Part shown: one piece after another, positions 27,801 to 30,800 of the stretch | Layout of the letters: each line of letters begins with the position of its first letter | Numbering within the stretch: the first letter of the stretch is position 1 | DNA from: Oculina patagonica | Taxonomy: Eukaryota | Direction: 5' to 3' | NCBI RefSeq assembly: GCF_052425735.1 | Contig: NC_135770.1 | Coordinates: 36,642,001-36,706,000 of the forward strand | Length of the DNA: 64,000 nt | Translations under genes and position numbers: made by a program | The notes under the pieces: generated by a model | The model's input: only the letters and a program-made list of their open reading frames with translations | What the model was told of the DNA's origin: nothing | Databases searched by the model: none

Positions 27801-30800
27801 TGGTCTCTTTTAGGGGTTCTTTTCAAAATTTCCGACGAGCATCCCCGCCCCTTTAATATGGGAGTCCCCCCCCCCCGGGGCTACTCCCCTTGGATGGATT
27901 GCTAGTCCATTCCCCCCCTCCCCCATCACCACAGAATCTTGCCGGTCAGGTTCCTGCAGCAACTCGTCACACCTTGTCAGATTATTTTCAAACTGAATGA
28001 AACCTCAAAATAATAGTTTTCTGATATAGAAACATGCCTGACTTAATCAAAACACACGACCAATACTAAGTACTACCTTGCAGTTATACCTTACCTAAAC
28101 TTATTAACTGACTTAAACTCATCAACCTGCAAGAGAATTGAAATTTTATACCAAGGTTAAGATTTCCAAACTTTCAATTTCTAGTACAAATATTATGAAG
28201 TGAATAAGCAGGAAAGTCTAAGATCACAATCTGTCATAATAACAAAGTCACTTGCAAGAAACACTTTTGGAAAGAGTGTCACTTAATTAAATAAATGCAG
28301 TACAATGATATAATATTATCATGACAAACACATCATCAAAAAGTCTTTTCAATTTCACAACTTACATGTTCTTTAGGAACTTGTGCAATCTCCAGCAGTC
28401 TTTGTTTTCCTTCATATTCTATGAGTGTTCCTCCCTGTGAGAAAAAAAAATTGTCATCAATTCTAGTGCAGGGCCTTAACTACCAAGAGGCAAACAAGGC
28501 ACTTGCGTCGCCTAGATTTTTACCCAACAGTGGACAGTATGGCACAACTTATAGCAAAACTAAAATGCAAAATTAACTAGTAAATGATACAAATTTTATA
28601 TTTTTCAGTACCTTTACATCAGCCCTTGTTTTATCTGTGACTTCCATGAGGAATTCTGGTGCTGGGGATCTTGCAGGATTTTCCAGGTAATTCAAAATAT
28701 CTGAACTTGGTTAAGGAATCTAGTCTATTTTTCTACACACCTCGTAGATTATTTTTATTGCCGTTTTCAGTGAAATGCGAACTCTGAAATTCAATCCTTG
28801 ACAACGGTTTACGCTTTTTGCTACGGTCAATCATCTTAGCGGACCTCTCAGGAAAGAGGAGCTCACTTAAACCAGGTCAAAAGGTCACGTCTGTCAGTTG
28901 TGATTGGTAGATTTCGATCCATTTTGTTTGTTTCCGTTTTTCATGGTTTGTTGGCTGTCGCCATAATTATGATTGATGGCAGCGAAAAACGCAATCGTTA
29001 GTTGGATTTTGAATATCAGAGTTCGCATTTCACTGAAAACCGCAATAATTTCTGTTTTCTGAGCAAGACAGGGAAACAGATTCAAAACAAAACTGTGCTT
29101 GAACTTTACTGTCACTACTAAGCGTGGCCAATATTCTCACAGTATGGTCTAAAAAACAACTTACAGATCACATACTTAATATGCCAACAGGGAAATGTTT
29201 TACTGCAAATTTTTGGCAGCATAAAAGGATATTTACATCAACAGTGGCTCCCAGGTTGTCGATGTTGGACACAAAAACATACTCTTTACCATCATCAATG
29301 AACTTTTGAAGAAGACCAGAATTGTAGAAAGAACGGTAAATATCGCCATGGCCTGGCGGATTGAAACTAGAAAAATAATAGAAAAACATGTACTGTAAAA
29401 TATCAAGACTGAAGGCTTCCATGTCCATGGACTGCCTTACAAAAGGACGATGATTTTTTGTCCCACACTCACGACGTGATGAATATATTTATCTTTCTAG
29501 TACCTTATTGTTACATATTTTCACGGGACTTAATTTTCACGATTTTCACAATTTTCCAAAAGTCCCAAAATTAAAGACCTCAAAAAGGTTCTTGCAAAAA
29601 ATAACGACGTGAACTTTAATACCTTCTATATAATTTGTTATGATTAATCAACGTTGCTGTCAGTTTACTACATAATTAACTTGGTACAATTGTCAAACTA
29701 GCTCTACTAATAATGTCAAACTGTTTAAAGTTTTGTTTTGTTATATGGTTTTGTGTAAAGTTGATGAGTTATTAATGAGTTTGAGAAGCTACTGTCAAGT
29801 AATGGTAAGTACAACTGCAGGTAACAGGAAATGAGGGTGGGTGGGAGGAAGGCTACCTTTCTGTCTCTGTTCCTTCAGCTTCTCAGATCACTTACCATTC
29901 AACATTAAATTCATCTTTTTTCATACCCATAACCCTGGGCAAAGGAAGCAAAGATTCCTTTACAATACGTGGATGACAGCTCTGATTGAAACATTCAATC
30001 TCAACGTTATATGCTTTGTACTTTCGCAGTGTCTTCAGAGTCTCTTCATGTGTGTTGAAGGAGTTCATAAGGACAAGAGGCACCTTGCATCCATACTTGT
30101 TGTTCAAATGCTGTGAAGAAAAAGTGTAAAAAGTTAGAGAGGTTAACAAACTTGAAGGGCTATGTCACAGATTTTTGAACAGCCAAAGGAAAACCTAAAA
30201 ATAATGGTTCATTTTTATAAATGTAGCGAGTATCAGAGCATTGAAACTGTTTACAAGTGCGTTTGGCTGGGGATGGCTCAGACGGAAATGGATTGCAACC
30301 TGAAAAAGTGAGGCTAACGTTTTCAAGTTGTTTCCGCACATCTTCAAACAAGAAGCTCTTAGAGCTTAAAACTACGTGTGATCACGTGACCTGCCTAGTG
30401 GAGCCATCTTTAATTGACATCGTTAATTGAAATGGCTGTATACAATGCATTGAAATAAGAGATAATTGGTTGATCACTCTAACTTGAAACTTAATCAGTC
30501 TCACCTCAATTTGCTGAACATTCATGTCCAGGAAGGTCATGTCGCGACGTAATGAGATTAGACTCTTGGGTCCAGTGCAACCCATGCTTGTCCCCAGACC
30601 CCCATTTAGCTTAATCACCACAACTTTATTGAGAACATCCTTGATACTGCTAGGTGAGACTTCAGGTATGTCATTGTACATAACAATCTAAAGACAACAA
30701 TAGAGTAATGAAGGCAACAAAATAGCATAAATTGAAATCCAGGTCCCAGTTGTTCAAAGGGTGGATAATGCTATCCACCCGTTCACTATAACCTGGTGGA

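Follow-up and report, generated by a model that had tools for sequence, protein, structure and literature searches.

The window (the whole stretch of 64,000 nucleotides that was analysed) carries a UGP2-like gene on its minus strand. A tblastn search with a vertebrate UDP-glucose pyrophosphorylase of 508 aa (P0048) matched 12 exons in collinear order, from about 31672 down to 24847, and the Pfam domain PF01704 (UDPGP) was found on ORF fragments of the orthologues, placing the host gene in the UDP-glucose pyrophosphorylase family. One intron of this gene, lying in the nucleotidyl-transferase core of the enzyme, differs from its neighbours in its signals; it and the associated features are listed in Table 1. 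It splits an Asn codon after the first base (A/AT, hence phase 1; here and below a slash marks the exon-intron boundary). The exon end at 29233 reads ...GTT GAT GTA A and the next exon, from 28700, reads AT ATT TTG AAT TAC CTG. The spliced product of the 29233^28700 junction aligns with UDP-glucose pyrophosphorylases, which agrees with the claim of a preliminary description of this DNA that the junction preserves the protein. The same description had warned that use of the nearby GT (GAT/GTAAAT) would be destructive, and joining it to the same acceptor does give a frameshift, ...VDIF being followed directly by a stop.

Table 1. Features of the UDP-glucose pyrophosphorylase locus (positions refer to the window, except for the U6atac genes, which are given by genome and contig)
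Feature	Position	Strand	Basis
UDP-glucose pyrophosphorylase (UGP2-like) gene, detected extent without N-terminal exon(s)	24847..31672	-	tblastn with P0048
Upstream exon, 44 aa plus first base of Asn codon	29233..29366	-	tblastn, cDNA contigs
Intron, very probably U12-type, 532 nt, phase 1, AT-AG termini	28701..29232	-	sequence and cDNA contigs of 4 runs
Predicted U12 5' splice site ATATCCTTTT	29223..29232	-	perfect match to /RTATCCTTT; complementary to own U11 5' end
Unused U2-like GTAAAT, beginning 4 nt ahead of the donor in use	29231..29236	-	sequence; joints listed in cDNA contigs
Foldback, MITE-like repeat, 294 nt, with 80-nt inverted arms (28755-28834 / 28969-29048)	28755..29048		sequence; contig depth
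Predicted U12 branch-point sequence TTCCTTAAC	28710..28718	-	perfect consensus; complementary to GUAAGGAA box of own U12
Downstream exon, last two bases of Asn codon then 29 aa	28612..28700	-	tblastn, cDNA contigs
U6atac gene L004	G000:C6:24214399-24214526	-	
U6atac gene L005	G000:C6:24275867-24275994	+	

The letters of the intron were correctly reported in the preliminary description: on the minus strand it starts with AT in a U12 donor motif, contains a U12 branch motif and ends in CAG. Its 3' part reads GATTCCTTAACCAAGTTCAG down to 28701, the last intron base; the branch motif is followed by CAAGTTCAG and ends 9 nt ahead of the intron end, so that from the two candidate branch adenosines, 28712 and 28711, there remain 11 and 10 intron bases respectively. 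No polypyrimidine tract is present, as had also been stated. The pyrimidine fraction at -33 to -4 is 0.43 as against 0.60-0.80 in the five neighbouring introns, and the longest pyrimidine run near the 3' end (6 nt) is the branch motif itself. The five neighbours are GT-AG introns with GTRAGT-like donors and tracts. The donor motif ATATCCTTT is not rare in isolation, since it occurs twice in the 64-kb window with 0.97 occurrences expected; because this count is within chance it was not used as evidence. The weight lies instead in the coincidence of the motif with a transcript-supported exon end, a branch motif and conservation among orthologues. Further matches to ATATCCTT or GTATCCTT are found at 15455-15463, 24039-24046, 24467-24474 and 62697-62704 on the plus strand and at 49010-49017 on the minus strand, a number that is again within chance.

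Much of the intron is occupied by the foldback repeat, whose inverted arms are 78% complementary and without which the intron would measure about 240 nt. Hundreds of contigs from all four sequencing runs described below pile up on the repeat, where their summed depth is very high and loose ends occur at 28754/28755 and at 29048. In run X1 one contig bridges 28720-29046 with just 32 other letters and so lacks the 294-nt foldback, which shows that not all relatives share the insertion and that it is specific to a lineage or an allele.

Evidence for splicing came from Logan contigs of four public runs (X1 to X4, belonging to four studies and three organism codes), which were aligned to positions 27200-30700. 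The runs were presumed to be RNA, and their contigs were taken as cDNA because each run has one contig from which all introns of the stretch are missing. Contigs and window disagree at a few percent of the exon positions, so the contigs derive from related strains or species and not solely from the assembled individual. The preliminary description had proposed a transcript check of the junction, and this bore it out: in all four runs a joint from 28696 to 29229 skips 532 nt with 4 ambiguous letters, which is compatible, after a shift by four, with removal of 28701-29232. At the five remaining joints the contigs of these runs show CT..AC on the plus strand, and thus GT-AG on the gene strand. 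A skip of 536 nt, which would mark use of the GTAAAT, does not occur among the joints listed for the four runs. The X1 contig that lacks the foldback is unspliced and of low depth, running from exon through intron to exon (29046-29258 and 28671-28720) at a depth of 9 compared with 50 for the spliced contig. It may stem from contaminating DNA or from unspliced RNA, intron retention being a typical feature of minor introns.

The cDNA fixes the mRNA and leaves a choice of cleavage register. As anticipated in the preliminary description, ATAT at both borders allows the junction to slide, and five placements (AT-AG, TA-GA, AT-AT, TC-TA and CC-AT) yield an identical mRNA. The AT-AG register was chosen because only there does the U12 donor consensus stand at +1. 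A related locus, L012, whose junction was deduced from protein homology, has no sliding ambiguity (A/ATATCCTTCC ... GTGCAG/GC ATA TTG) and is AT-AG. From these letters the exact cleavage register of the window intron, too, would be AT-AG.

The genome encodes all four snRNAs specific to the minor spliceosome with scores above the Rfam gathering scores: U12 (3 copies, 93-97 bits), U6atac (2 copies, 110-113 bits), U11 (2 copies, about 90 bits) and U4atac (1 copy, 61 bits). The 5' end of U11, UAAAAGGGCC, is complementary to the donor CCUUUU, and U12 carries GUAAGGAAAA, which is complementary to UUCCUUAAC with one A bulged, both pairings being judged by eye. U6atac is unusual in that both copies have GAGCCGAGAGAAGG where the Rfam consensus has GAAAGGAGAGAAGG, three consecutive conserved positions of the donor-pairing box being changed. 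A pattern search of the genome with NNN at the three variable positions returned the same two copies only and no canonical one. In human U6atac, G14 and G15 pair with donor positions C5 and C6 (PMC4980772). Position 14 is C in the genome studied here, so that one of the two G's is replaced, yet the donors are still ATATCC.

Orthologous introns were sought with the 44-aa upstream exon among 1.84 billion representative proteins, and the DNA was checked wherever the contig could be obtained. Many of the matches are short ORF fragments that run from exon into intron and read VD[VI]-N-I-L or VD[ILVM]-S-I-L followed by junk. In the window the read-through codons AAT ATC CTT (N-I-L; 29233-29221) mimic the spliced AAT ATT TTG (N-I-L; 28700-28690), and as a result the ORF-caller fragments of relatives (P0002 to P0004 and P0010) look right for three residues before turning to junk. 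On the short contigs of P0002, P0006 and P0009 the donor alone is visible. P0017, expected from its read-through peptide to be a vertebrate, proved to belong to an organism with short introns, in which the site is occupied by a U2-type intron of 58 nt (L019, 1293-1355).

Table 2. Termini of introns at the orthologous site (aa identity is to the window over aligned exons; junctions of L009 to L016 were placed by protein homology, not cDNA)
Locus	aa identity	5' boundary	3' boundary	Termini
L008	90%	A/ATATCCTTTC	contig ends	AT, donor only (ATATCCTTT donor)
L009	87%	A/ATATCCTTTG	TTCCCTTAACCAAGTGCAG/AT	AT-AG
L010, L011 (two assemblies)	83%	A/ATATCCTTTT	ATTTCTTAACCATAGCCAT/AT	AT-AT
L012	75%	A/ATATCCTTCC	GCTTTAACAACGTGCAG/GC	AT-AG
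L013	83% (one exon)	A/GTATCCTTTC	contig ends	GT, donor only (GTATCCTTT)
L015	67%	A/GTATCCTTTT	CTCCTTAACTGTTCTAAG/AT	GT-AG U12
L016	68%	A/GTATCCTCTT	TTCCTTTACCTGCTTTTAAG/AC	GT-AG U12
L017, L018	83% (one exon)	G/GTAATTCC	not seen	U2-like donor
L019, L020	not calculated	T/GTAAGACG	TTTTCTTCGAAG/AT	U2-type GT-AG, 58 nt

The codon and phase of the site are identical across the loci of Table 2. The donor motif ATATCCTT is kept in L008 to L012, and GTATCCT takes its place in L013, L015 and L016. The branch motif of L015 and L016 is TCCTTAAC or TTCCTTTAC. The distance from TTAAC to the intron end is exactly 9 nt in the window, L009, L010/L011, L012 and L015; this constant spacing is what is expected of a functional U12 branch site. 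The orthologous introns are between about 121 and 1472 nt long and show little similarity outside the two motifs in the stretches that were compared, namely the 30 bases at the start and the 60 at the end of each intron. In a bird assembly (GCA_013397495.1, L021 10644-10916) both exons form one continuous exon with no intron at the site. In the literature searched there was nothing relevant that links UGP2 or UDP-glucose pyrophosphorylase with a minor or U12 intron. Vertebrate UGP2 is not known to be listed among the minor-intron genes, and the intronless bird orthologue, together with the lack of a literature link, fits this.

A comparison of orthologous termini had been suggested in the preliminary description and proved informative, since a single homologous site offers a natural series: U12 GT-AG (L015, L016), AT-AG (window, L009, L012), AT-AT (L010, L011), U2 GT-AG (L019) and intron loss (bird). 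Such a series illustrates how subtypes can be switched by single bases and shows that AT-AG is able to persist for a long time. A maximum-likelihood tree was calculated from eight rows and 259 aligned residues of six exons; it was rooted at the midpoint and is weak at its deeper forks. One clade (support 97/97) unites the window with L009, L010 and L012 and leaves the GT-AG loci outside, and within the clade L012 is sister to the other three AT loci (97/99). The path from the window to L012 measures 0.56 changes per site, about half of that from the window to the vertebrate, which argues that the AT-AG state is old and stable here and not a short-lived intermediate.

The ancestral form at the site was probably a GT-AG U12 intron. 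On the most parsimonious path an old intron position would have held this ancestral form; on the stem branch of the clade to which the present genome belongs, one substitution of A for G at +1 would have produced AT-AG, which would then have been stably retained; and in the lineage of L010 and L011 the final G would later have become T, giving AT-AT. The direction of these changes is that suggested by the tree. The proposal of the preliminary description that AT-AG is a plausible intermediate between AT-AC and GT-AG stands in part. The idea is already published (Sheth et al. 2006, PMC1557818), and at this site AT-AG looks derived from a GT-AG U12 intron such as that of L015 and L016. It seems, however, to have lasted throughout a deep clade and not to be transient, and the sole onward step that was seen leads to AT-AT, not to AT-AC. 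The same description had expected AT-AG splicing to place a central enzyme under minor-spliceosome control; such predicted control is not special to the AT-AG form, because in more distant taxa the same site carries a GT-AG U12 intron.

Taken together, the motifs, the cDNA joints, the presence of four minor snRNAs and the conservation of the motifs in orthologues uphold the original reading, and we consider it very probable that a genuine U12-type intron, of the non-canonical subtype AT-AG, interrupts an Asn codon of the UDP-glucose pyrophosphorylase gene. They argue strongly that its removal would depend on the minor spliceosome. The U11/U12 di-snRNP would recognise ATATCCTTTT (by U11) and TTCCTTAAC (by U12) together, U6atac would then take the place of U11 at the donor, and a branch adenosine lying about 10-11 nt before the intron end would attack the donor, the intron being released after its terminal CAG. 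Among the points that count against the AT-AG U12 reading are a review in which AT-AG combinations are described as apparently disfavoured, poorly spliced and probably inefficient (PMC3584512), the U6atac box that differs at three positions, and the ambiguity of register caused by ATAT.

The last of these points opens the way to an explanation in which the mRNA junction is the same and cleavage takes place in another of the five registers, for example AT-AT (28699-29230), so that the intron would not be AT-AG at all. Shifts of 0 to +4 cannot be told apart in cDNA owing to the ATAT repeat, AT-AT U12 introns are known (PMC1557818), and L010 and L011 end in AT-AT. However, ATATCC falls on +1 to +6 at shift 0 alone (with shift 2 the intron would open with ATCCTT), the 9-nt spacing after TTAAC is constant if measured in the AT-AG register, the AT-AT ends of L010 and L011 arise by a change of the last base within that same register, and the unambiguous junction of L012 (A/ATATCC...GTGCAG/GC) is AT-AG. 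We therefore consider a different register very unlikely. It is likewise highly improbable that the major spliceosome removes the intron and that its AT-AG ends are those of a U2-type intron by chance. U2-dependent introns with AT ends do exist (Sheth et al. 2006, PMC1557818). Yet the donor is a perfect U12 consensus without U1-type GTRAGT features, TTCCTTAAC is perfect and stands at U12 spacing with no polypyrimidine tract, so that the signals of a U2-type intron are missing, and the adjacent U2-like GTAAAT is unused in the joints listed. Both motifs, moreover, are conserved among orthologues whose introns differ in length and have little else in common in the compared stretches.

A further explanation would be an error of assembly or base calling, the true ends being GT-AG or AT-AC. 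The cDNA contigs do not reach across the intron ends, and the ends in the window are those of the assembly. Nevertheless A is found at +1 in five independent assemblies of relatives (L008 to L012) and the terminal CAG in two, and among the differences listed for the unspliced X1 contig none falls at 29231-29232 or 28701-28702, although this last is a weak point; an error of this kind is extremely improbable. AT-AG is usually portrayed as poorly spliced and transient. A bolder proposal accepts the AT-AG intron and holds that it is evolutionarily stable in this animal clade (in loci about 25% divergent in a very conserved enzyme), its tolerance being perhaps linked to the unusual U6atac box, AGCCG as against AAAGG in Rfam. 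We regard this combined proposal as unlikely. If it were true, donor recognition in the lineage would lean less on U6atac pairing than it does in mammals, and the constraint on the terminal bases would be relaxed.

For the very probable AT-AG U12 intron there is a practical consequence, in that gene finders limited to GT/GC-AG introns would be expected to cut this conserved metabolic gene short or to shift its frame, as use of the nearby GTAAAT leads to a stop; the preliminary description had likewise predicted that automated annotation is likely to mis-model the intron. The ORF callers applied to relatives already emit read-through fragments that end in ...VD-N-I-L and junk.

AT-AG is the most frequent non-canonical class of U12 introns, with 20 cases (11 human, 8 mouse and 1 from Arabidopsis) in the survey of Sheth et al. 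(2006, PMC1557818). Some of them, such as those of NUP210, USP21, RAPGEFL1 and INPP5B, are conserved between human and mouse, while XPO4, ACTR10 and SCN10A are AT-AG in human and GT-AG in mouse, and CUL4B is AT-AG against AT-AT (PMC1557818). AT-AG was proposed there as a viable intermediate in subtype switching. Like the introns of that survey, the present one follows the U12 consensus at both donor and branch site while beginning with A and ending in AG, and its orthologues (L015/L016 and L010/L011) are one terminal base away, being GT-AG or AT-AT. It is unlike them in its host, a UDP-glucose pyrophosphorylase gene of a non-vertebrate genome whose bird orthologue has no intron at the site, and in that AT-AG is common to loci up to 25% divergent in a conserved protein and so looks long-lived.

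In the CENATAC study the minor introns AT-AC, AT-AA, AT-AG and AT-AT were grouped as "A-type" (AT-AN; PMC8280824). With an AT 5' end and a variable last base, the window intron (AT-AG) and those of L010 and L011 (AT-AT) belong to this class. Dependence on CENATAC and a higher basal retention of A-type introns are findings from human cells (PMC8280824), of which the one low-depth unspliced contig described above is a hint only. For the U12 class in general, the review quoted above gives an optimum of 11-13 nt between branch site and acceptor and no polypyrimidine tract (PMC3584512). The GT-AG U12 intron of L015 and L016 (and of L013, where only the donor is seen) shares with the window intron its codon, its phase and the donor core TATCCT, and in L015 and L016 the branch motif lies 9-11 nt ahead of the acceptor, as in the U12 type; the difference is G, not A, at +1. 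No new mechanism is revealed by this intron. The intron class and the idea of an intermediate are already documented, and what is new here is the host gene, the non-vertebrate clade and the series of several states at one site.
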